In this document: piece after piece, positions 1,120-47,857 of the stretch | Numbering within the stretch: the stretch's first letter is position 1 | Layout: every line of letters starts with the position of its first letter | Origin: Thecamonas trahens ATCC 50062 | Taxonomy: Eukaryota > Protista > Apusomonadida | DNA: 64,000 bases | Direction of reading: 5' to 3' | Assembly (NCBI RefSeq): GCF_000142905.1 | Contig: NW_013657664.1 | Coordinates: 1-64,000, forward strand | Translations under genes and position numbers: made by a program | The notes under the pieces: model-generated | Databases searched by the model: none | Seen by the model: only the letters and a program-made list of their open reading frames with translations | What the model was told of the DNA's origin: nothing

Positions 1120-3350
1120 CGCCGCCTTCCCTCTGCCGGCCAAGTACCCGCTGCCCCTATCGCCCACACCCCACACACACCCATCAGTCGTATCATACTC
1201 ACCTTCATCAATGCTCAAGCCCAATCGCCATACCTACTACCATTTCGCCCGTCACGACCCCNNNNNNNNNNNNNNNNNNNNNNNNNNNNNNNNNNNNNNN
1301 NNNNNNNNNNNNNNNNNNNNNNNNNNNNNNNNNNNNNNNNNNNNNNNNNNNNNNNNNNNNNCTATCCCAGCCACAACTCCCACCCCCATGCTATGGCCAT
1401 CTTCACCACCATCCCATCGCGCACTCGGCTTCCTCTTCCTCCTCCTCCTCCTCCTCTTCCCGCTCCAGCTCACCCGCATCCTCATCCCCGACCCTGACAC
1501 CCATACCCCTCAACCATCACAAGTCATACTGCCCAATCTCCAACCAACAGCAATCTCAAGCTACCCCGCTCCGACCCAGCCCCCTCTGCTGTCCTTGCCT
1601 CGACGGCCACCAGCCGCCAGCCGCCGCCCGCTCGCCCGATCAGCCCACCCTCATCGCCACCTAGCTCCCTCCCACCACTAGCTACGCAACCCACGACCAC
1701 ATGCAAGGTCGTCACTCACCCCACACTATCACCAGTACCAATATCGCTATCAGCGATACCCATCGACCTCGGCTCACTTGCGCGTCGATTTGTTTTGCCT
1801 TGGCGGTTGAGCACGCCCTCGACCGCCCGACCCCGCACATGCCCCCCATCACACTTATTACCAGCTATACCCAATCTGATTTCACTACTACTCTTCTACA
1901 CGCCCACACTATCCCCTTGCACCGTCTCCAATCCACAACTGCAGTATTCCAGAATCCGAGTTCTGCCACCTGAGGCCCAAGTTGTTGGCCCTGTCCCTTC
2001 GAAGGTGCTCACCCCCCCGCCCCGGGCCCATCACCGACCCCCACTCCCCACCATCCACACCCACAACCACCACACCCACACCACACATACTCACCACCCC
2101 TGCAAACATAGCTACTCACTCCGTGCCCGCCGATATTCACATCAGCCGACGCCACCCCGTCAACAGCATGGCTGCCGACCGCCTGCTGCTCGCCGCCGAC
2201 CACCGCCCGCCGCCGACCGACCACCGCCGGCACCACCGAGAGCAAGCTAGCCATCGATAGGGCATTGGAGGCGATGCATACGGATAGCCACAGCATTGGC
2301 AATGACTACCAGTCGGCCCTTTAACCCACTCCTCCCCTCCCTCGTCCGGCCTTGCCCATCACAGCCCCCGCCGGCCTGGTCATCGCCAGCCGCTGCTGCC
2401 GCCGATCACCGAGCCAGACGACGAGGCCTATGGACTGGCCAGGACGAGAAAGGACAAGAGAGGGCAAGAGTGACCGATAGGCAATGCAGTTGTAGGCCAG
2501 AGTGCAATGGTCTGCCTCCTCTTCCAATCCCAAGCCATCGTCCCCATCGACGTCCATCTCAATCCAATCCGTCCGCCCTCCTCGCCCTTGCCGCCCAAGT
2601 ACCCGGCTCCCTCATCGTCCACACACCACACATCCCCATCATACTCACCCTACCCACGCACATCCATCCGCAAGCCCAAGTTCCATACTCACCATCGTTT
2701 CGCCCGCCACGCCACCCACGTCACGACCCCCCTCATCCCCCCCTACCATACTCATTACGCCCTATCACCACCAACCACTACCCCCACCCCCTACCCAACC
2801 ATCATCACCTCCATCCCAGCTGCAACTCCTACCCCCATACTGTGGCCATACCCACCACCATCTCATCGCGCACCCGGCTTCCTCTTCCTCCTCATCCTCC
2901 TCCTCTCCCCGCTCTACCTCACCCCCATCCTCATCCCTGACCTCGACACCGCCATCTGCTCAACTATCACAAGTCATACTGCCCATCGTCCAACCAACAG
3001 CAATCGCAAGCCATCCAGCCCCGACCCAGCCTCCTCAGCTGCCCCTGCCTCGCCGACCACCAGCCGCCAGCCGCCGCCCGCTCGCCTGATCAGCCGACCT
3101 TCATCATCACCTAGCTTCCCACCACCATCTACGCATCCCGCGACCACACTCCACGAGCTCCAGTACCAATATCAGCATCACCCCAACCCATCCACCTCGG
3201 CTCACTTTCGTCACGACTTGTTTTTCCTGGGCGCTTGAGCACGTCCTCGCCCGCTCGACCGACCGCCGCTGAGCCAGCCGACCGCCGCCCGCACCACCTC
3301 CATCAAGCTCGCCATCGACAGGGCATAGGAGGCAAGGCAGACGACCAGCC
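1120..3350. repeat. Diverged subtelomeric tandem duplication (copy 1 about 1120-2290, copy 2 about 2570-3350)
   Basis: Shared blocks include ATCACAAGTCATACTGCCCA, CCAACCAACAGCAATC, CCACCAGCCGCCAGCCGCCGCCCGCTCGCC and CAAGCT.GCCATCGA.AGGGCAT; boundaries are approximate. Confidence 0.8.
1262..1361. other. Assembly gap (100 N); further gaps at 40457-40556 and 52902-53001
   Basis: N runs. Confidence 1.
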
Positions 3351-3588
3351 ACATGAATACCAATGCCTCACCCCATGAGGCTTGGTTAGTACTGTGATGG
3401 GGGACCACACAGGAATACCGAGTAACGCATTCTCCTTTCTTTTTGCCAGTCGCGCCACCCTCCTCTGCCCCCCCCCCCCTCCCCCCAAACTGTCCACCAC
3501 CTCACCGCCCGACAACTTGTCTTGCCACGCATCCCCATACCCCCCCACCCCACACACACACATACACATACATACATACACGTCTCCT

Positions 3589-6500
3589 ATGTACACGCCT
3601 GTGCTGGGAGAGGTCTTCACCCAGACCCCGGCTCCACTACGCGGACACACCACCACCGTCGACCTGGCGCCAAAACAGCGCGCCAAGCACCGCCCTCGCC
3701 GCGCCCTCGCCTGGGCGGACATGCCGCTCGACCCGAGCCTATTTACCATGCCTGCGCTCACAGGCGTGGCAAATCCTCCGTCATTGTCTCCGGTGGCCTC
3801 CTTTGAGCTTGCTCTTCCCGCCCCAGCTCCCGAGCCGAGCGCCGCCGCCGAGCTCGCCTTTGCGCCCGGCCCGGCCTCGTTCATCGACGCCGTCCGCACT
3901 CCGGTCGTGCCGGTTGTCCGCGCCTCGCCCTTCTTTTCCGAGGCTGGGGAAGAGGTCTTTGATCGCGTCTACACCGACCACTTTTCGAGCCGCGCCTCTC
4001 ATCCACATCTCGCCCTGCCCGAGGACGTCCTCGTGGCGACTGTCCTACATCTAGTCGTCGGCGTCCCCTCGACCTGCTTTGTCTACGATGTCACGACAGC
4101 CACCTTCATCGGCGCCGGCGCGCTCCGCATGCCGTTTGCCTCGACCGCTGCGTCGCAGCGCCTGCTCTCCGAGTTTCTGGCCCTGGGCACCTACTTTAAG
4201 CGGGTCGAGGATCTCGCCGGCGCCGTCCATCTCCGCGGCCGCATCGCCTCGTGCTTCGGCGGTGAGCTCGCCCTTGTCCTACAAGAGTTTCGCTGGTTTG
4301 TCTTGCAAATCGGCGATGCTGCGCGCGCTCGCCCCGACTTGCCGCTCACTCTGATGGAGCTGCTCCATGTCGTCCGCGTCTGGCAATCGCGCTTTGCCTT
4401 TCTGGCGAACGCCTGCGGCGTTGCCGATCTCAGTCGCGGCCCGTGGGATCTTGCGGATGCGCTCAACAACATGCCGTCCGGTCCTGCCCTCCTGCGTCAT
4501 CTTGACGCAGTCGCTTCGGCTCCGCACGACACGGTTCTTGCGCCGCTTGCCCGTCGCCTCCTCCAAGCCGCTGCCGTACCGGTCCTCGATGCTCTCGCCG
4601 CCCTTGTCTTTGGTGGCAAGGTGCGGAATCCAGACGGCGAGCTTCCTCTTTCCTCACGGCCCGGGGCCGAGGCCGGTTTCCTTGTCGCCGGCGAAGCCGC
4701 CGAGGCCTGGGAAGCGGTTGCTGCCCTCGCCCCCGATCCGGACCTTGCCCTTCCACCTTTCTTCCATCGGCTTCTTCCATCAGCGCTCCTCGCGGCCCGA
4801 TCGCTGGCCTGCATCCGCGCGCTCGAGCCGCAGCACTATGTCTTTGATGACACAGCTCGGTTCCCGCTTGTCTTGGCGCACGACGGCGAGTCCGAAGCCG
4901 CCTTTCGCGCTGCTGTTGCTTTCCATATCGAATGCCACAGCAGTCTCGTCACGGCGCTTGCTGACCGCCTCACTCCCGACCTTGTGTCAGCCCAGGCCAG
5001 GCTTGATGCCGCCCGTGCTGTCTTGCGCGATGCCGCTGAGGCGCGCGCTCGTGCTGCACAGGTCGCTGCTGATGCCAAGCGTGAGCGCATGGGGGCCATC
5101 CTCCGCGACCGCGCTGCTGCCCGCGATCGTGCCGCTGCCGCCGCCGCTGAGGTTCGCGCCGCCGACGCCGCCATGGCCGAGGCCTGGCGCCTCGAGGCTG
5201 AGCAGTACGCGCGCGCCCGCGCCGAGCTTGCCGACCACGCACGTCAAGAAATCAAGGACTACTACGCCGCCCGCGAAGCTGCTCTTGAGGCCAAGATTGC
5301 TCGTGCCGAGTGGCGTGCCCTTCGTCTCACTCGCCGTGCCGCACTGGAAGCCTCCCTTGCCGCCGCCGCTGCTGCCGCTGCCGCCACTGGCGACAACAAC
5401 GACAACTCGCCCGTTTCCCCTCTGATCGTTGTGCCGGCTCCCACGGTCCACTACGGCCGTTTCTCTTCTACCTCGCCACTCGCCCTGTCTCCCTCCTCCT
5501 CGCCGACCTCCTCGCCGTCGCCGTCGCCATCCCCGCCGCCATCGTCATCCCCGCCGCCATCCTCGTCAGCGGTTCCTGCCCTCTCGGTTCCTAACGACGT
5601 CGACGCCACCTCCAGCTCCAACCCGGTTCCGGCACTCACCATTGCCGCCGATCCGACACCGCCTCCATCCACCACCCCCATCCCGTCACCCACCCCGTCA
5701 CCCACCTCGTCACCCACTCCCTCGCCAACCTCGCCCAATCCTCCCGCTCCTACCACTCCTGCCACCGTCGACAACGATGTCGTCGCCACTACCACGCTCG
5801 CCGCTCGCCTCTCGACCCAAGTCCGCCTCGTCAACCGCGCTGTCCTCTACCTTTTTATGTACCCGCTGCATCTCGAGCAGCATCTGCGGGCACTGCGCGA
5901 CTTTCTGCTGATGGGCGCCGGCGACTTTGCCCACTCGCTCTCGACCCTGCTGTTTGAGCGCCTCGAAGAAGTCACCCGTCCGCGTCCCACCGACCTTGAG
6001 TTGGGCCTCATTCTGGACGCTGCCTTTGCTGTCCATGCCCCGAACGAGACCGCTGATCCACCGCCGCTCTCGCTGGCATGGGCCGAGACCGACGGCGACG
6101 CCCGCTCCGGCTGGTCGCCGTACGTCCCCGGTGCCTTTGACAATCTCTGCCTCGGCTATACCGTTCCGCCGCCGCTCGACATCGTCGTCGACCCGCCGGC
6201 GCTTGCCTCCTACCAAGCTGTCCACGTGCTTTTTCTCCGCATCCAGCGCTGCTCGGCAGTGCTCACCGACTTGTGGTCGGTCCTGCAAGCCCCGCGCCTC
6301 CGCAACGTCCGCAACACCTCGGTCCATGCCCTCCATCTCCGCAAGCTTCAGCGAGTCCGTGCGCAGATGCAGCACTTTGTCTCGATTATGCAGGGCTATC
6401 TCGCTTCGCAGGTTCTCGACGCTGCTTGGACCGACTTTACATCGGCTCTCCGCGCCCGGGTCGGCTGTCTTGACTCACTCCGTGCCGAGCACGCCGCCTT

Positions 6501-23101: not shown

Positions 23102-24068
23102 TGTCAGAAGAAACTGCAATTCACAAAAACTCTAGCAAGTGAGTATGTGCCAAGACAATGGGACGTTCGCCCGCCCGCCACGGTTCGCCAGCCCGCCACG
23201 GTTCGCCCGCCCGTCACTCGCCGCCATCGTGTCATTTGCCCTCGCCAACGATTATTCGTTGAAAAAAACTGAAGCCAACGGCTGGCCACAGCTCGCAGCA
23301 CTAGGGGGGTAGGCAGGGGGGCTAGGGGGCTATACATTGGTGTAGGAATTGAGAACAGAGAAAGAGGGTATGGCCCGGCTCGTGGAGAACCAGTATGCGT
23401 GGGTACGGGGGTGCAGGATGAAAGTATGCCTCTTCCTGCAGCTCCCCCCACCCACCCACACACCCACAAATACACGTCGCGATCATCGCCGCTTCACCAA
23501 GTCAACCAAGACAACCGCCGCCCCCCCCCCCTCCCCCCTCCCCCTCCCCCCTCCCCACCCCTTCCCCTCCCCTCCTCCTCCCCCTCCCCCCTACCCTCGT
23601 CCAACCACCCGCAACTAAAAAACATTTCAGTCCAAATACACACAAACAACGTCACTACGGTACGTACTTCTGTGGCCGAGCGAGGTGTCGTCCCCCGCGG
23701 TCAGCCTCGCCCCGCAAAGCTGCCGGCTGCCGGCTGCCGGCTGCCGCTCGGTGGCTCGTTGGCTGCCGCATGCAACAACAGCCTCTGCGCTCCGGCCAGT
23801 CCAGCCACAAACAAGCCTAGCAGCTCATTTGGACACAGCGTTGGGCTGGTCAACGCAGCACCTCTAACCCTGCGACACAGCTTCACACCTTGGTTGGTAA
23901 GCGCAACAGGGATGAAATATCAACGCGATGGGACACAAGGTGCCCACCACCTTGTCAAGTGATGGCCTGCCCCCGGTCAGGGGCACTTGCACCGACGACG
24001 ACAACAATGACGACGACGACGACGTCGACACCTGGGGCTCGGCCATACCCGACTCTGAGCGACCAAGG

Positions 24069-35403: not shown

Positions 35404-35945
35404 ATGGCCCACGAGAGCATTTATCCGTTTGCCATTCTGACTGGTGGTGTGGCCATGATGGGTCTTCTGCAGTACGGCGTTGGTCGCCTGCTCAAGCCTG
35501 ATGAGGTACGTCACAACGGGAAGGGAGGGGTGGGTGGCAATGGCTGTGGGCGGTGTCAGCTGCGGGGCGGAGTTGCGACAGAGGCGATTTTTGGTGGCTC
35601 CCGTCACGGTACCAATACCTCTGCCCTGTACGTAATATCCATGTCATGGGTACCGTATCTTGAGTAGAGGGTGTAGAATGTTGTAGCATACTCTGTGCCG
35701 AGTTGTGGCCAGGTGTTTGCTTGCTACCGTGTGGTAGACCTCGCTGCGGGTGGGTGGTCACACGGCCTGGGCGTGATGGCGGTCGGGGGGAAGGGGTGGT
35801 GGGAGGGTGGGAGGGGGAGGGGGAGGGGGAGGGGGGAGGGGGGAGGGGGAGGGGGGGAGGGGGAGGGGGGGAAAGAAGGGGTGAACTCATTGGTTGTCGG
35901 CGTATGCTTGGCTGTGCGTGTGCGGTGGTGCTGCTGCTGCTGCGG

Positions 35946-39011: not shown

Positions 39012-40391
39012 CTACGCGCTCGCGCCGTACGGCAGGTCCCACTCACGAGCGAGCACAACAAGCTCGTCAAAGTACGCGCGGTAGTACGCCGACCGCCGCT
39101 TGGGCCAAACAAAGTAAAAGATTGTGAGCTTGACAAAGTCGAGGCCGAGCGAGACGAAGAACGAGGTCGAGAAGAGGGCGACAGCCGACCAGAAAGAGTC
39201 GCCGCCGCCCGATTTGGCCTGCGCGTGGAAGAGGATGGCGAGGACAACAATGATGATGACGCAGGCGGCAATGATGATGTACCCGAGAAACTTGACCACA
39301 AAGGCCACGCAGCAGCCGCGGCCCTTTTTCGTCACAAACGACACAATGCGCTTGACCGTCGAGGTGATGAAGAAGACCGCAAGCGCAACCAGGCAGTAGA
39401 CAAGAATCCGCCCGGCGAGCGAGGTCGACTCGGTATCGTCTGACGCCATCGAGTTGGAGAGGTGCTGGAACTCAGTCTGCGTCGGATCATTGGCGTTTCC
39501 GTTCTTGGTGCACTTGGAGATGGAAGTCGGCGAGACGCAGAGGAGCCACGAGGCCTTGTCCGGGTCGTCGAGACTATCGCACCGCGGCCGGTTGTCGTCG
39601 CCAACCGAGTTGCCGTTGTAGCAGTACGGCACGCAGACAGGCGGGTCCAACTCGCCCGATCCGCACCAAGTAAAGGCCATCGGATCCGCCACAGACGGCG
39701 CCGTCGCCGACGAGTGCGGCGGATAGCCAAAGAGCTCGTACGAGTGATCGCTCGAGTACTGCGCGTCCCACGGGGTCGGGAGGCACGCATCGGCGTGGCT
39801 TCCCGCCAGCGAGTGGTCGCGGCGACAATTCGCAAGGCAGTACGCCGCTGCAGAGCACGAGACCAGGTCGCGGGTCATCATCTGATACACCATGGCTCCG
39901 GCAAAGGCGGCGAGAAAGACAAAGGCGAGCATGAAGATCCGTCCCTTCCGTGACAGCACTCGAGCCTGGGTCGAGTACAGCGGCTCCGGGAAGAGGACAG
40001 CAAGCGCAAGGTGCTCGCGGAGAAAGTAGTTCCACAACCGCGGCGGCAAGATCTTGGCCTCGGCCGCCGCAAGCACCAGCTGCGGATTGACTACCGTCCC
40101 CTCGTCGTCCACGTAGCGCTTCCTCAGCCTCCTCGGCGGGATCTTGTGCATCTCTCCACTCTGTCGCCCTTCCCTCCTCTTCCTCCGACTCGATGCATTC
40201 ATCTTGGGCGCCGCCCGCACCGGTGCCATTCCTCCGCTATCCGCATATCCATCGCCATCATGGCTGCCATAGGCAGGTGGCAGTCCACTCGGAACGTCAC
40301 CCGAATCGTTATCGCCCGCGACAGAACCCGTCCGGCCACCCATCCTCCCACAGTCATCATCCTGCGGAGAGTACTCCGGTGCCACACGCAT
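39012..40391 (-). CDS. Uncharacterised multi-pass membrane protein with a Cys-rich extracytoplasmic loop
   Basis: 459-aa ORF with about 4 hydrophobic segments and about 10 Cys in the loop after TM1; 5' end may continue beyond the gap. Confidence 0.7.
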   Translation of the reverse strand: MRVAPEYSPQDDDCGRMGGRTGSVAGDNDSGDVPSGLPPAYGSHDGDGYADSGGMAPVRAAPKMNASSRRKRREGRQSGEMHKIPPRRLRKRYVDDEGTVVNPQLVLAAAEAKILPPRLWNYFLREHLALAVLFPEPLYSTQARVLSRKGRIFMLAFVFLAAFAGAMVYQMMTRDLVSCSAAAYCLANCRRDHSLAGSHADACLPTPWDAQYSSDHSYELFGYPPHSSATAPSVADPMAFTWCGSGELDPPVCVPYCYNGNSVGDDNRPRCDSLDDPDKASWLLCVSPTSISKCTKNGNANDPTQTEFQHLSNSMASDDTESTSLAGRILVYCLVALAVFFITSTVKRIVSFVTKKGRGCCVAFVVKFLGYIIIAACVIIIVVLAILFHAQAKSGGGDSFWSAVALFSTSFFVSLGLDFVKLTIFYFVWPKRRSAYYRAYFDELVVLAREWDLPYGASA

Positions 40392-40895
40392 CCTTATCCG
40401 CCAAGCGTTTGTCTGTTAAAGAGATACTATGTGTGTGTGTGTGTGGGTGGGGGGGTNNNNNNNNNNNNNNNNNNNNNNNNNNNNNNNNNNNNNNNNNNNN
40501 NNNNNNNNNNNNNNNNNNNNNNNNNNNNNNNNNNNNNNNNNNNNNNNNNNNNNNNNGGCAAACAGCACTCGTTTGTGTGGCAAAGAAGGGCCCCAAAAGG
40601 GGGGGGGGGGGGGGGGGGGGGGGGGTGAGGGCTGAGCGAGCGGTGGCCGTACTTGCCTTGCTCCCTGTTCCGTGCCAATGTCAATTGGTCTCGTTACAAA
40701 AATTGTTCTTCCTTTTTTGTTGCGTCGGCAGAGATAGAGTATGCGGCGACGTAAGGACGATTGCGGAGGGCTTGATCAAGACACCCGACATCCTGCATTC
40801 GACATCCAACTCAGCTGAGTGATGCGGGAGGAGGGGATGGAGGAAAGACTGCATGGTGTGTGTGTGTGTGTGTGTGAATCAGTTTAATGATGTAG

Positions 40896-41173
40896 ACTAG
40901 AGGGTCCACAACCAACCGAACGTCGGACGAAGCCCCCGACCGTAGGAAGGGACTGTCCGGGCCCGTCTGGCGCCAACTTACTCGTGAGCCTCGTCATACG
41001 CATGAAGCGCTTGGACTTGGGGCCTGGCCTTGGGTAGGGGTCAGGACGTGGATCGGACCGGCGTGAGCCGGGCCGATTAGAACAATTATGCCGCCCTGCA
41101 CGGGTGCAGGGGTTAGTTATCCAACCTTACGGTAGGGGGTCTCCGACCCGATAAGGTTGCATCGGATCTTGGG
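40896..41173 (+). ncRNA. Candidate structured ncRNA 'A' (about 280 nt), family unknown
   Basis: Hairpins CCTGGCCTT/GGGGTCAGG, GATCGG-CCGGC-GTGA-GCCGG-CCGATT (GNRA loop), CCCTGCA/TGCAGGG, AACCTTA/TAAGGTT; the ends can pair; G-U pairs favour the plus strand. Confidence 0.5.
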
Positions 41174-41396
41174 TGCAGGAGGAGGTCTTGTCCAGAAAGA
41201 GGGGGGAAGGGGGGAAGGGGGCGAAAAAAGGGGGTAAACTGGCGTGTTGGGGGGGTTAAGAGATGGGCGTTGGAGATGGCGTTGAAGATGGCGTTGACAA
41301 TGGACGAGACACAGCAGCGCTGTTGAGAGCTCCTGTGTTCCAGATCACGTGCTGGAGAGTTGTTGCATGGAGTTAAGCAGAGAAGCACCTACAGGA

Positions 41397-42400
41397 ACTG
41401 CAGGGTGCCACCTGCCGTGGGATTGTACGCCGGCCCTAAGTACCGCGAACCACTGATCTCACTACGGCGAGAAGACGGCCGCCACATAGGACATCCGTAA
41501 GTGGTGCGGCGTACAACTTGTTGGGTGCTCAACATCGACTGCAGGATACTCTAGTCACTTGGAATCCCTCACTGGGGCGCCGACGACCGATATTCCTTCA
41601 GATCCCACCCTCCAAGAGGCCGACCTCTGTCCTGGTTGCAGCTCAGGACCACCGAGCATCCGGCGGTCCACCAGGGAGAGGTTGGCAATATGGATGATAA
41701 TGCCGACAACATGTGACGACACTGGTTGCCGTCGGCGGACCGACGGCGGGATGGACACACATCCCATGGGGGGTTAGGAGGATCAGCGTGAGCAGGGCGC
41801 ATGCGCCCTCGCCCCGCTGATCCGTCCACACCTCGCAGCGCCGTTTAGGGACGGATCCCTGACCGCAACCAACGGGGGCGACAAACGGTAGGTGCACCTA
41901 CCGCCGGTCAACCCCCTTCGAATGAGACCGCACCCCCTTGCGGACTCCGGTCGCATGACGTTTGGCGGGTCATTTCTGACCACGAGGAAGGATGTGCAAG
42001 GGCGCCAGTCGGACTGCGTCCTGGCGCCCAGGGGGCCGGCTCCTCCCCTGGCCCCCCTTCCTGGTGGTACACGCTCCTCGGCCTGCTCAAGACACCGGGT
42101 GCACCCCCGGCCACGGGCAGAGCCCGTGACTGGTTGCTACCCTTCATCCGGTGCCCTGAGCGCGGATGAAGCCGAAGGTCGCGCGACCCCAAAAATTACA
42201 TTGTCCACGACTCCCGCACTGTCCAAGGACAGTACGGCCCCCTCATGTAGGGGGTCTCCCAGGGTGTGCACTGTGTCATCCACACCACAGCCCTGTTTGT
42301 CACCGGGACTCCCGACCGCGAGCCTGCGAGCGGGAGGGGTAATTCCGGAGAGAGGAGTAAAGACTGCATGGTTGGGTCGACACGCCGATTGGATCTTGGG
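41397..42400 (+). ncRNA. Candidate large structured ncRNA 'B' (about 1000 nt), family unknown
   Basis: More than 15 back-to-back hairpins, long-range closing stems, no credible ORF, and motifs shared with element A. Confidence 0.6.
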
Positions 42401-42534
42401 CCGGAGGCTCGTGCCATTTTACGATGATCACAAACTCGTAGAGCATAACAACAAACGCCAACTGACAACGCGATGCTGAGCCTCCACGCCACAACGATGC
42501 TAAACCTCCTCGTTCATGTTACTGTGATCAGCAG

Positions 42535-43959
42535 CTAAAGAAACTCAGGCTTGAGCGAGAGCGTGTTTGAGGCCTTGTCCTGCTTGGCCATCTCCTTGAA
42601 GAGCTTCCCCAGCTCGAGGGCGCCGGCCTTGGAGACATTGCCGAACTCGGCGCTCATAGCGGCGCGTACCTGAGCCTTGGTCTCACCCGAGTGCTTGAGG
42701 AGGAACTGGCGGACAGCTTCGCGCGAGACGGTGTCGTGTGCGGACGACAGCGGCTTGGCCCGCTTGGCTGGGCGGGCGCCGCCGCTGCCGCCGTTGCCGG
42801 CGTCCTCGTCGCGATCGAGGGCGCGCTTGCGCGAGATGGGCGCGATCTTGGGCTTGTTGCGGAAAGCGAGCTTGTCGAGGTCCTCGACGCGAATGTCGTC
42901 TTCGTCGTCGTCGTCGTCGTCGTCATCGTCGTCGTCGTCGTCATCGTCGGCGTCGTCGTCGTCGCCAAACTCGGGCAGATCGTCGTCGTCGTCGTCGTTC
43001 TCGTCATCGTCGTCGTCGCCATACTTGCGCTTGTACGCCTCGACGTCTTCCTCGTCCTCGTTGATGGGCTCGACCATGATGTCGCCCTCCTCGTCGTCGT
43101 CGGCAATGGCAAAGTCGTCCAAGTCGTTGGCTTCGATGTCGTCGATGAGGCCCTGGGCCTCGGCCATGCCGTCCTCGTCGCCGGTGTCAAACTGGGTAAA
43201 CGCCATGTACGCCGCCGCCGACTCGCGCGACGGAACCAGCGACGAGCCGCCGACCATTTCGTTCACCGACACAATGTCCTCCACATCCTCCTTCTCCACA
43301 ATCTGGTGGATGAACCGCTTGGCCCGCTCAGTCAAGTACGGCTGCTTCTTCTGGAACTGCAGCCGAAGTTCGGGATCGCGCGCCGCAAGCTCCTTCTCGG
43401 CCTCGTCCAGCGACTTGAGCTCGCGCTCGATGTGGCGCTTAAAGTTGTACCACCGCGAGATGAGCGAGACGCTGATGGTCTTGGTCTTGGCGCTCCGCTT
43501 CATCACCACGTACGTGGCGTCGTTCGAGTCGACGCCGAGCAGCTCGCCGCGCCAGACCTCGGGCTCGACACCGGCCGACGATGCGGTCGACGAGGTTGCC
43601 GACGACGGCGGCGGCGGGCGGCTGGCCACGCGGCCCTTGCTACCGCTGCGGCTTCCGGCCGTGGGCGGCTGCTCCAGCTGCCAGACCTTGCGCTCGTGGC
43701 GCTCGAGCGAGTTGGTGCGGCCGGTCAGGACCGACCTCCTCATGGCGTAGTTGATCTTATGCATGGTAGCAGCGTCGCCGATGATGCGCTGGCCCTTTTT
43801 CCCTCGCTGGAGCGGAAACTGAGCGAGGTAGAACCGCTCGTCCACAGGCTGGAACAGCTCGAGCTTGTACACCTCGCCCTGGGACTCGGCCAGCGCCTCG
43901 TCCATGCTCGCCCTCTTGCCGCCCTTTTTCCCACTCCTCCGTATTCCGCTCTTCTTCAT
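42535..43959 (-). CDS. GTF2F1: TFIIF large subunit (RAP74/Tfg1)-like
   Basis: WRGELLG..ATYVVM...ISRWYNFK...KSLDEAEKEL, an acidic linker, and a C-terminal winged-helix-like VSREAVRQFL...LSLK. Confidence 0.75.
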   Translation of the reverse strand: MKKSGIRRSGKKGGKRASMDEALAESQGEVYKLELFQPVDERFYLAQFPLQRGKKGQRIIGDAATMHKINYAMRRSVLTGRTNSLERHERKVWQLEQPPTAGSRSGSKGRVASRPPPPSSATSSTASSAGVEPEVWRGELLGVDSNDATYVVMKRSAKTKTISVSLISRWYNFKRHIERELKSLDEAEKELAARDPELRLQFQKKQPYLTERAKRFIHQIVEKEDVEDIVSVNEMVGGSSLVPSRESAAAYMAFTQFDTGDEDGMAEAQGLIDDIEANDLDDFAIADDDEEGDIMVEPINEDEEDVEAYKRKYGDDDDDENDDDDDDLPEFGDDDDADDDDDDDDDDDDDDDEDDIRVEDLDKLAFRNKPKIAPISRKRALDRDEDAGNGGSGGARPAKRAKPLSSAHDTVSREAVRQFLLKHSGETKAQVRAAMSAEFGNVSKAGALELGKLFKEMAKQDKASNTLSLKPEFL

Positions 43960-44124
43960 ACTACGCGCTCTTCTTCTCTGTCTCTTGCGTCGAAGAGTCG
44001 AGTGTGTCACGCTGAACTCGCCCGCCTCCTGCGACTCGCTGCAGCCAGCTGTCTGTGGTGCTACGGCGACTCGCCAGTCACCCGAGGAACGACCCAAACT
44101 TGCCCTTGCTCCTAAATCGTTTGT

Positions 44125-47100
44125 TTACCTGCCTCCGCTTCGGACGTGGTCATTGGTGGTGGGCATGGCGGCCAAGGCAAAGTCAGACTGCGGTGCCTGG
44201 TGCGGCCCGCTCATGATAAAGTGGGTGCGGGTTGAGGTGGCAAACGGGAGGCCGGTGAGGAGCTTGGGTGTGACGAGGAACGCCTGCGCGGTGCGGCGGT
44301 GAGCAACGGCGGCGAGGATGGACCAGCCCTTGCGCTCGTTGTTGACGTCCATGCCCTGGTTGATCTCGTCGGCGAGGAAGAACGGGACGATGACTTGTGA
44401 CTGCAGCGCAATGAGGTAGAGCATGGTGGAGATGGCCCGCTCGCCGCCCGACTGGGTCTGCGAGTTGAGCCGCCGCGGCCGCGAGCCCTTGAACGAGACG
44501 CTGATGACAATGCCGTACTCGTCGTAGTCAAGCGGGTTGGCCGGTTTGTCCAGCTCGACGCCGCCTGACGCCCCGATGAGCTGCATGTACGCCGCAAAGT
44601 CCCTGTCCATCCCCACCAGCACCGACTCAACTCGCGCCGACCAGCCTTCGGCCAGCGATGCGATCTTGTTGGTGAGCCCGTTGAGCTGGGTCTTCAGCGT
44701 CTCATCCTGCGCCTCGAGCTCCTTCCGCCGCTTGAGCACCTTCTCGTACTCAACCACGCTCGACTCGCTGCCATGGATCGAGCTCAGCTCGCTCCGCTTC
44801 GTCGCCAGTGCCGACTTGGCGCGGGCCGTCGAATTCTCAAGGCCATCCATGACCTGCATCATCTCGGACGTCGGTTCCTTGACGCCCGACAAGTCGCGCG
44901 CATGCCGCTGCGCGCCCTTGGCCCGGGACTTTTCCATCTTGGCGGTGGTCTCGAGCTGCCTGTACGCCTCTTCCGCATCCGCGATCATGCTATGCACGGC
45001 CTCGGACTGCGTCTGCAGCTGCCGCTCAAACGTCCTCGCCACGCTCTCCTTAAGCGACTTGGAGTCGCGGACGACCCGCAGCTGCACCACGGCCTTGGCC
45101 AGGCTGGCGGCCTTCCCGGCGAGTTGGATCAGTCGCGTGATTTTCGTTGCGAGCTTGGCTCGCAACTCCTCGAGCTCGTCCCCGTTGCTCTCGCTGAGGT
45201 TCGCGAGTTCGCTCTCCGTGCGCTTGGCCTTCTCCTCTGCTCTCTTGTGGATCTTGAGCTTTTTTTGAGTTCGCCGATCTTGGCCTTCAAGGTAGTGAGC
45301 TCATTGACTTTGGTCTCGTGTGCCTGGATAGCCTTTCGCAACTCGGCCCGTCGTGCAGCGAGGTCGGCCTTGATAGCGTCCAAACTGGCTTGCAGGCGCG
45401 CAATCTCGTCCGCAGGCGGCGTATCCTTCTTGAGTACATTTGCACGGTTAATCGACGACGACGACGCCACCAGCTGCCGCGCGCCGTAGTTCGACTTGCG
45501 GTACATTGCAAACGACTTTGGCGACAAAATGCGGTTGAGCGCGGGAAAGGCCCGGAACACCTCGTCCTTGTCCATGGTTTCCGGACCAAACACTATTGAG
45601 GAGTGTGCTTCGCTCCGGTTGAGGAAGAGCTTGACAATGTCAGGCGCATCGTACGTTGCATCCAGATAGTTCTCCACCCCGAAACGCGCCAACTCCTCCA
45701 GACTCGCTGGATGCGAGCGAAACGGGTCGCCCATATCGACCACAACTGTGTTGACCGCGAACGCCAACTCCGGAAACTTAGACTCCAACATCTCGAGGTC
45801 GGCAGGGTCCGAGAACAGGATGATATACTTGTTGTTCTTCGAGATGACCTTTTCCAGGTAGTTGCGGTGGACTTCGATCGGAACGTCGAGCGTGGCGAGC
45901 AGCGGGCCCTCGACCACCCCACGCAGCCTGCCCTCGGCCCGCGCTTGGTCGAGGATCTGACACACCCGGCGCAGAGACTGGCCCGCCTTTCGACTTCCAA
46001 CACGTTCGAAGCATCGCTGTCGCCTCTCGGACATCACGGCTTCGTACGCCTTGAGCTTGGCCTCAATCTGCGACTGGCGGTGGTCACCGGTTGCAACCTC
46101 GCGCTTCAGCTCCGACGCCACCGACGAAAAAGCTTGCACCTGCTCCTTCGCCGTCTGCAACTCGGCATTCAGCTCATCCACGCGCTCCTGAACGCCCGCT
46201 CCCGGGTCGAGTTTCTTGGCCATGCTCTTCTGGTTCGCAATCTCGGACTGGAGATTTTCGCGCTGCGCGCGCCGCTTCGCTATGTCGCGCTCATGGTTCT
46301 TGATCTGATCGTACAGCGTTTGAACGTCCGACTTGGCATCCTCGACAAGATCCTTCATCTTCTCCCTCTTCGTCACCATGTCTTCCATGGACTGTCTGGC
46401 TTTTGCAAACTCCTGACCCATCGCGGACAGCTTGCTCTTCGCCTCGTCGAGCTCCTCGATCATCGGCCGCGCCTCGGCTTTCAGCTTGACGACCCGTTCC
46501 CTGGCAACAGCCGCTTCCGCCTTGGCATTTTTGGAACGCACCTTAGCATCGGCCAACTCCAGCCACGGCAACACCTTGCTCAGCATCGCCACCCTGTCTC
46601 GCAGCGCCTCGCGCTCGCGGAACCGGTCGGCCTCGCCTTTCAGCCGCTGCTCTTTGGTCCGTGTCGCCTCCAGTGCGCTCTCCAGCGCCCCGACCTTGTT
46701 CTCCAGCTCGCGCTGCTCCACCCGGTGCTTGCTCAGCTCCCCAAGCACCTGCACCATCGAGCCAGGCTTGCCGGCCTCGCTCCCGTCCATGGCCCGGATC
46801 GTGCACTCCAGCAGTGACCGCGGCTCAAGCTTGGAGAACTCGCGGACTCGGAACTGCGGGAGGAACTGCGTCAGGTTGTCAAACTGGATGCCCAGCCTGG
46901 TCACCAGCGCCGACACGTCGTGCTTGCTGCACTTTCTGCCGTTGATCTGCCACAATGACTTTCCCACCTCATCACCCAGGTCCTTGCGCACAATCGCCCG
47001 GTGCACCACCCAATTGGGCCCGTCCGGGTTGTACAGCTCGATCTCAAGCTCGGCACGCGTTTGCCCGTGTGAAATGAAGCTCGTCTCCTTGTCCGCCCCG

Positions 47101-47857
47101 CCCAGCAGCTTGGTGCTCGCGTTGAGCGAGAGGAAGAACGCGTCCACAAGTGACGACTTGCCGGTCCCGTTAGGCCCCACGACCACGTTGAGCCGCGGGC
47201 CGGGGAACAGCTCCACAGACTCGTACGCCTTGAAGTTCACCAGCTTCATCCGCACAATTGACGCCTTGCTGTACGCCACGTCGCCAATGTTGACCTCAGG
47301 CAGGAGCTCCAGCGAGGCCAGCTCGCCCGCCCCCCGTCCGTTCCTCCCAGGCCGCGGCTCCGCTTTGCCGGGCGAATGTCATCGCCGCCATCGTCACCGC
47401 CTGCACTTGATGCCGCTGCTTCAGCTGCTGCTGCGACAACAGCTGGCCGGGCTGTGTCCAAAAAAGGTCGCATTGTGTGTGCCCCGCCGGCCCGCGCCCC
47501 ACCCCCACCACCAACCCCACATACGCACATACACACGCACACACACACACACACACACATACACACGTGCAGTCCACACATTCACACATCCAGTCCCATC
47601 TGGTGTAAGTGCAACAGGAGGCGCCTACGCCCCCGGTAAAAATCATGCTCTCGCCGTCATGTCGCAACACGCCGAGGGCACACACCGCAACACCCCCCCC
47701 CCCCCACACACACACACACACACACACAACACAACCCTACACCGCACATACCCAGTGAGAGCTCAAGGTCAAAGACCTCGGGACTGGAACTCATTTCATC
47801 CATGGCTTCAATCTCAGCCTTCTCCTTGTCGCGAGACTCGCGCCGCCGCTTGCCCAT
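44125..47857 (-). CDS. SMC5: SMC5; intron 47452-47751; one-base frameshifts at 47330-47335 and 45260-45266
   Basis: PGPRLNVVVGPNGTGKSS, IQFDNLTQFLPQFRVREFS, coiled coils and hinge, QSGGERAISTMLYLIALQ, DEINQGMDVNNER, FLVTPKLLTGL. Confidence 0.93.

Follow-up and report, generated by a model that had tools for sequence, protein, structure and literature searches.

A hairpin-rich 1.5-kb interspersed repeat of Thecamonas trahens is probably a SINE-like non-LTR retroposon

The hairpin-dense stretch at 41397-42400 of the window, i.e. of the whole 64,000-nt stretch of Thecamonas trahens DNA analysed here, corresponds to about two-thirds, counted from the 5' end, of a single copy of an interspersed repeat of 1,489 nt. 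This element is probably a long SINE-like, non-autonomous non-LTR retroposon of T. trahens or a close relative, and its hairpins are a property of the element's RNA (or DNA) and not of the host locus. A preliminary description of the region had delimited the element at 41397-42400; these limits have to be redrawn, as the repeated unit extends over 40870-42358. The insertion explains a gap of 2.1 kb in a genome with almost no intergenic space, 1.5 kb of that gap being inserted sequence. With the element, Thecamonas, which branches next to the opisthokonts, gains a repeat family that had not been characterised. Neither the element nor any other repeat family of Thecamonas is described in the accessible part of the literature covered by our search. 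Unusual traits of the family are a length three times that of a typical SINE, a rank among the most structured sequences of the window and the combination of a near-invariant head with a variable tail. For annotation, the element is to be masked as a repeat and not entered as a unique ncRNA gene. If the head were indeed a selected RNA, or the telomerase RNA of this lineage, its interest would be much wider.

The element resides in a spacer between two genes encoded on the minus strand, in a window with a base composition of 60-68% GC and densely packed genes. Clustered at 90% identity, the proteins encoded in the window are singletons, and its CTP synthase shares 53-58% identity with its named matches, from chytrid and other early-diverging fungi, Capsaspora and animals, and 68% with one unnamed ENA protein.

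39012-40391, minus strand: SUR7-like gene, one border of the spacer
42535-44097, minus strand: TFIIF-alpha-like gene, the other border of the spacer

The spacer measures 2,143 bp, its true length being uncertain owing to three features of the host sequence beside the element, namely a (GT)n run (40430-40449), an assembly gap of 100 N (40458-40556) and a G27 run (40599-40625). Without the insertion about 630 bp would remain, which fits a compact genome. C-rich or G-rich homopolymer-like tracts are also seen in several spacers of the window, e.g. at 23521-23600 and 35785-35872. A metagenome scan with an alignment of the TFIIF-like neighbour gave no matching locus, and the same protein used as homologue query gave one match, with 34% identity, on a 2.5-kb contig. 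A Rad50/SMC-like gene (44125-47279, minus strand) is split into two overlapping ORFs, one for the N-terminal ATPase part (45129-47279) and one for the C-terminal part (44125-45165); the split could reflect an intron or a frameshift, or else an error in the assembly.

Further copies of the element were found by scanning JGI metagenome contigs with a 20-mer from its minus strand. The search for copies, suggested in the preliminary description, hereby yielded two contigs (L001 and L002): L001 aligns over 2982-4488 with window 42362-40856 at 98.7% identity, and L002 over 297-1348 with window 42371-41322 at 99.3% identity, nothing in the rest of either contig matching the window. No second copy exists within the 64-kb window, and self-BLAST of the spacer gave low-complexity matches only. 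In the three-way alignment the similarity starts at one common base (ACTCCTCTCTCC...; window 42358 = L001 2986 = L002 312) behind unrelated upstream sequence, the upstream flank of L002 also being unlike that of L001. The unit is 1,489 nt long in the window copy and 1,490 nt in L001. It is thus present in at least three unrelated genomic contexts (window, L001, L002), two of which are metagenome assemblies; metagenome contigs may be chimeric at repeats, and such chimerism would itself imply a repeat. Viral and prokaryote collections scanned with head and tail motifs gave no match.

The origin of the additional copies can be read from L001, which encodes on its minus strand (306-2846) a hAT-like transposase of 846 aa (zf-BED + DUF659). 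Its ORF appears intact and lies 139 nt from the 5' end of the element. The transposase clusters at an identity of at least 90% with five proteins of T. trahens ATCC 50062, and the extra copies therefore derive from Thecamonas-like genomes. The five close paralogues also suggest a young hAT family in the T. trahens genome.

Comparison of the copies defines the following parts of the element, numbered along the unit E such that position p corresponds to window position 42359 - p.

40870-42358, minus strand: whole repeated unit E, 1,489 nt, non-coding (alignment of three copies)
41061-42358, minus strand: head module, E1-1298, holding all strongly structured blocks (copy comparison, folding)
40870-41060, minus strand: 3' module, E1299-1489 (copy comparison)
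40858-40869, minus strand: additional (CA)n of the simple-repeat tail at the 3' end, continuing the terminal CACACAC of the unit
42359-42372, minus strand: 14-nt target-site duplication, upstream copy (minus-strand sequence ACCATGCAGTCTTT), abutting the first base of the element
40844-40857, minus strand: downstream copy of the 14-nt target-site duplication, directly after the (CA)n tail

In the window copy, an exact 14-nt direct repeat thus brackets the unit and its tail. The five target bases beyond the duplication resemble the first five bases of the element, a resemblance compatible with a junction formed at a microhomology. The tail of L001 differs from the (CA)n of the window in being a degenerate CA-rich run. 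Neither terminal inverted repeats nor LTRs were revealed by repeat search and inspection of the ends. Target-primed reverse transcription of non-LTR elements leaves behind a fixed end, a simple-repeat tail and a target duplication. Accordingly, the fixed 5' end, the one-sided tail, the 14-nt duplication, the lack of an ORF and the dispersed copies lead to the reading as a non-autonomous retroposon. The tail corresponds to the 3' end of the RNA, so that the sense strand is the minus strand of the window, and not the plus strand as originally proposed.

Most likely, the element would have been inserted into the spacer between the TFIIF-alpha-like and the SUR7-like gene by target-primed reverse transcription of an RNA intermediate, with an autonomous non-LTR partner element presumably supplying the reverse transcriptase. 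Hereby, the hairpin-dense 1.3-kb head may represent a constrained RNA module needed for stability, packaging or recognition or, alternatively, may have been inherited from a structured cellular RNA. Joined to it, the 3' module (about 190 nt), which is more variable, would act as recognition tail. This mechanism we infer solely from the anatomy of the junctions; a partner LINE or reverse transcriptase was found neither in the window nor in viral contigs or prokaryote collections.

The element shares several traits with SINEs and other non-autonomous non-LTR retroposons, such as LINE-tail-bearing SINEs and SVA-like composites. It is likewise non-coding and dispersed, starts at a fixed 5' base, ends in a simple-repeat tail and consists of two modules, the 3' module evolving unlike the head; the 14-nt target-site duplication of the window copy falls within their range of 7-20 nt. 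SINEs are usually 100-600 nt long. The element, in contrast, extends over 1.5 kb, its head is not recognisably derived from tRNA, 7SL, 5S or snRNA (Rfam, ARAGORN), and this head is predicted to be unusually strongly folded and is almost invariant between copies. Because of its length of 1,489 nt and the lack of a small pol III RNA head, we call it SINE-like rather than a classical SINE. Several observations speak against the retroposon reading. The target-site duplication is present in only one of the three copies: L001 shows no duplication of at least 7 nt, and the L002 contig stops before the 3' end of the element. A 1.5-kb element without a tRNA-, 7SL- or 5S-like head is atypical for a SINE, and the 3' module is not detectably structured.

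The transposase gene beside the L001 copy also brings a DNA-level origin into consideration, according to which the element would be a non-autonomous DNA transposon or a cluster of palindromes (MITE/hAT derivative, Helitron or foldback element) and its hairpins would be DNA structure. In line with this, both strands fold about equally well (see below) and several of the hairpins are perfect palindromes without a spacer. However, the element has no terminal inverted repeats, no transposase is located beside the window copy, and the flank upstream of the L002 copy bears no resemblance to the transposase-bearing flank of L001. hAT elements duplicate 8 bp of target, and Helitrons none. The 14-nt duplication is inconsistent with either, and a one-sided simple-repeat tail is foreign to DNA transposons. 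Taken together, we regard this origin as very improbable and keep to a retroposon as the preferred reading.

With regard to coding capacity, the preliminary description had seen no credible ORF, an assessment that is borne out by all measures applied. GC content by codon phase is flat (0.64/0.59/0.62), compared to a GC3 of 0.78-0.88 in the neighbouring genes, each of the six frames contains 9-17 stop codons, and none of the spacer ORFs of at least 57 aa matches Pfam, even at E <= 1. Its view of the element as unrecognised was likewise correct. Searches with Rfam yielded nothing meaningful in the whole window at gathering score and only noise in 40300-42700 at E <= 10, and ARAGORN gave no match. 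An RNase P/MRP-like RNA, which had been among the suggested identities, is not supported, as its conserved core is unmatched by Rfam at gathering score or at E <= 10.

The hairpins themselves are real features of the sequence: 15 of the 15 stems and palindromes that had been listed for the stretch were found in place. For the 1,004 nt at 41397-42400 we calculated minimum free energies (MFE) of -477.5 kcal/mol (plus strand) and -499.9 kcal/mol (minus strand), compared to -416 ± 11 and -439 ± 12 kcal/mol for dinucleotide shuffles (n = 40), corresponding to z = -5.7 and z = -5.3. When excess stability is regressed on GC, the stretch tops the sampled 1-kb windows on the minus strand and is about as extreme as the most extreme background window on the plus strand. 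At a resolution of 200 nt, the background comprised 129 windows with a mean z of -0.1 and -0.3, a standard deviation of 1.2-1.4 and a minimum of -4.5. None of these 129 windows lies below z = -3 on both strands, compared to z values of -4.8 to -8.3 on both strands for 41597-41896 and 41997-42296.

41597-41896, both strands: structured block A, z of -5 to -8 in 200-nt windows
41997-42296, both strands: structured block B, z of -4.8 to -6.3 in 200-nt windows
41780-41823, minus strand: 44-nt hairpin, E536-579, with 22-bp arms that are 82% complementary (ensemble mean P(unpaired) 0.14)

The excess of predicted folding over dinucleotide shuffles thus holds for the 1,004 nt taken together, but not for their 5' fifth in plus-strand reading (41397-41596), where no excess is found (z = +0.6 and +0.2). 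Similarly, the 203-nt stretch 40858-41060, which comprises the 3' module and the tail, shows no structure beyond that of shuffles (z = -0.08). The segment 40997-41196 is structured on the minus strand only (z = -4.7 versus -0.9 on the plus strand), which mildly favours, as far as predicted folds can tell, structure at the RNA level on the sense strand.

The earlier account had furthermore interpreted most mismatches within the stems as G-U pairs on the plus strand. The MFE structures do not bear this out, as they contain 23 G-U pairs for the plus strand compared to 38 for the minus strand. Neither folding energies nor G-U counts are decisive for the strand, and the strand was taken from the tail and the duplication. 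The stem between 41401-41419 and 42367-42398, proposed to close the whole element, did not hold up either. Its energy of -17.0 kcal/mol is matched or beaten by 20% of shuffled and 17% of random genomic partners, and it uses bases from 42359 on, which lie outside the element. In the predicted global fold of the unit, several helices of 5-8 bp join E146-430 to E1124-1483, the predicted long-range helices including a purine tract paired with a pyrimidine tract.

Such a globally closed fold, together with the non-coding and highly structured nature of the element, would also be compatible with an integrated viroid-like or retrozyme-like circular RNA. Like retrozymes and viroid-like circular RNAs, the element is non-coding, predicted to be highly base-paired and probably RNA-derived. 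It differs from retrozymes in that it carries no ribozyme motif and no LTR-like direct repeats, and in that its duplication comprises 14 nt and not 4 nt. Hereby, no hammerhead, HDV-like, twister or other self-cleaving ribozyme was detected with Rfam, even at E <= 10. The helix proposed to close the element does no better than chance and extends across the element boundary, and the three copies have the same ends and are of unit length, neither permuted nor tandem. We therefore consider a viroid-like or retrozyme-like origin extremely improbable. The broader part of that earlier suggestion, an integrated RNA-derived element, comes close to the evidence; the viroid-like or retrozyme form does not, as neither ribozyme matches nor LTR-like repeats were found and the closing helix is no better than chance.

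Divergence between the copies is distributed unevenly along the unit. Between the window copy and L001 there are 2 differences in E1-1298 and 13 in E1299-1489 (15 in total), and between the window copy and L002 there are 2 differences over E1-1037. We estimate a binomial probability of about 1e-10 for the contrast between head and tail under uniform divergence. This contrast, which also speaks against the retroposon reading, is not expected from neutral decay of independent insertions; it could stem from selection acting on the head, from gene conversion or from two subfamilies with a common head.

Selection on the head would also be expected if the copies were genes of a dispersed multi-copy host ncRNA family, comparable to snRNA or SL-RNA genes, in which the 1.3 kb would be transcribed and under selection and the last 190 nt less constrained. 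The extreme divergence contrast (2 in 1,298 versus 13 in 191), the exceptional predicted structure, an Sm-like site followed by a hairpin and a motif that occurs three times on one strand only (see below) are all in line with such a family. On the other hand, the sequence upstream of the copies is not common to them, so that there is no conserved promoter. Moreover, the duplication brackets all 1,489 nt and the tail, from which it follows that the 3' module arrived together with the head, and the element has no relative in Rfam. A host gene family is thus unlikely. As for the ncRNA reading of the preliminary description, its non-coding, strongly structured character without an Rfam match stands, but a unique host gene is at odds with the three contexts, the duplication and the tail.

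Two types of motifs in the head deserve separate consideration.

41771-41778, minus strand: CCUAACCC, an 8-nt permutation of the telomeric C-strand, E581-588, one base 3' of the 44-nt hairpin
41770-41776, minus strand: first UAACCCC motif (motif count)
41252-41258, minus strand: second UAACCCC motif, E1101-1107 (motif count)
41109-41115, minus strand: third UAACCCC motif, E1244-1250 (motif count)
42189-42197, minus strand: AAUUUUUGG, Sm-site-like, E162-170, followed by a 12-nt palindromic hairpin (motif search)

UAACCCC consists of the C-strand unit of the telomere with one additional C. The background of about 59 kb contains no TAACCCC on either strand, and outside the telomere the rest of the window lacks it. 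AATTTTT, for which 0.77 occurrences would be expected in the 64 kb counting both strands, is found only twice, each time on the minus strand within the spacer that hosts the element. One occurrence lies inside the element (42191-42197, E162-168), where it is followed by GG and the hairpin, and the other in the host flank (40698-40704, minus strand) beside an A6/T6 run.

These motifs raise the possibility that the 1.3-kb head is itself a structured RNA of the cell or a retro-copy of one, with the telomerase RNA (TER) of apusomonads as the most specific candidate. The telomere in the window consists of (CCCTAA)n, CCUAACCC is one of three 8-nt template permutations in the 64 kb, and the predicted hairpin 41823-41780 ends one base before it, in the manner of a template boundary. 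The sense strand of the element carries AAUUUUU, conservation is far higher in the head than in the tail, and lineages of this kind are not covered by the Rfam models. In TERs of Ustilaginales and Malassezia, AAUUUUU has been proposed as Sm site (PMC12506658). Fungal TERs measure 0.5-2.5 kb and may be released by processing of an mRNA 3' UTR (PMC9564094), those of basidiomycetes being located in 3' UTRs of protein genes. To those fungal TERs that derive from mRNA 3' UTRs (U. maydis, PMC9564094; putatively Malassezia, PMC12506658) the element is similar in being of kilobase size and structured, in lying directly downstream of a protein gene on the same strand, as basidiomycete TERs do, and in combining a telomere-complementary motif beside a helix with AAUUUUU on the same strand. 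A search of the spacer for an Emi1-like upstream ORF, as in U. maydis TER precursors, revealed no twin-Cx9C ORF.

Several properties of the element do not agree with a telomerase RNA. TER genes are normally single-copy, whereas the unit occurs in at least three unrelated contexts and bears the hallmarks of an insertion, a target-site duplication and a simple-repeat tail; in this the element differs from the fungal TERs. A permutation of 8 nt is expected in an estimated 17% or so of random 1-kb regions, and in the window 3 such permutations are observed against about 12 expected. The template of a TER extends over more than one telomere repeat (unit plus alignment bases) and is single-stranded. 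CCUAACCC comprises only 8 nt (6+2), most of which would be paired according to the predicted P(unpaired) of 0.36, and since it belongs to the thrice-repeated UAACCCC, it need not be a template. The Sm-like motif (E162) is located 5' of the template-like motif and not near the 3' end, i.e. on the wrong side compared to the fungal TERs. In addition, neither a pseudoknot nor a CR4/5 domain is demonstrable. Inspection of the unit identified no A-rich partner for a U-rich triple-helix pseudoknot, and the P6.1 element of CR4/5, a 4-bp stem with a NUNGN loop (PMC3592445), carries too little information to be recognised in one sequence. The copies, at about 99% identity and with 2-15 differing sites, are too alike for covariation. 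The accessible part of the literature that was searched holds no report on telomerase RNA in Thecamonas.

Derivation of the head from a cellular structured RNA such as telomerase RNA is thus a long shot. The wider proposition that the head is a functional structured RNA, i.e. either a retro-mobilised apusomonad telomerase RNA or a new class of large RNA selected across dispersed copies and travelling with a LINE-type tail, appears distinctly unlikely.

The telomere lies at the beginning of the window. Positions 1-144 represent the chromosome end and consist of (CCTA)21 followed by about 10 CCCTAA repeats. The outermost array of CCTA tetramers differs from the canonical repeat and could be a natural variant tract or an artefact of assembly or base calling. 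Another gap of 100 N is located in the subtelomere (1262-1361), and from the telomere inward GC skew is strongly negative over a long stretch (2000-36000).
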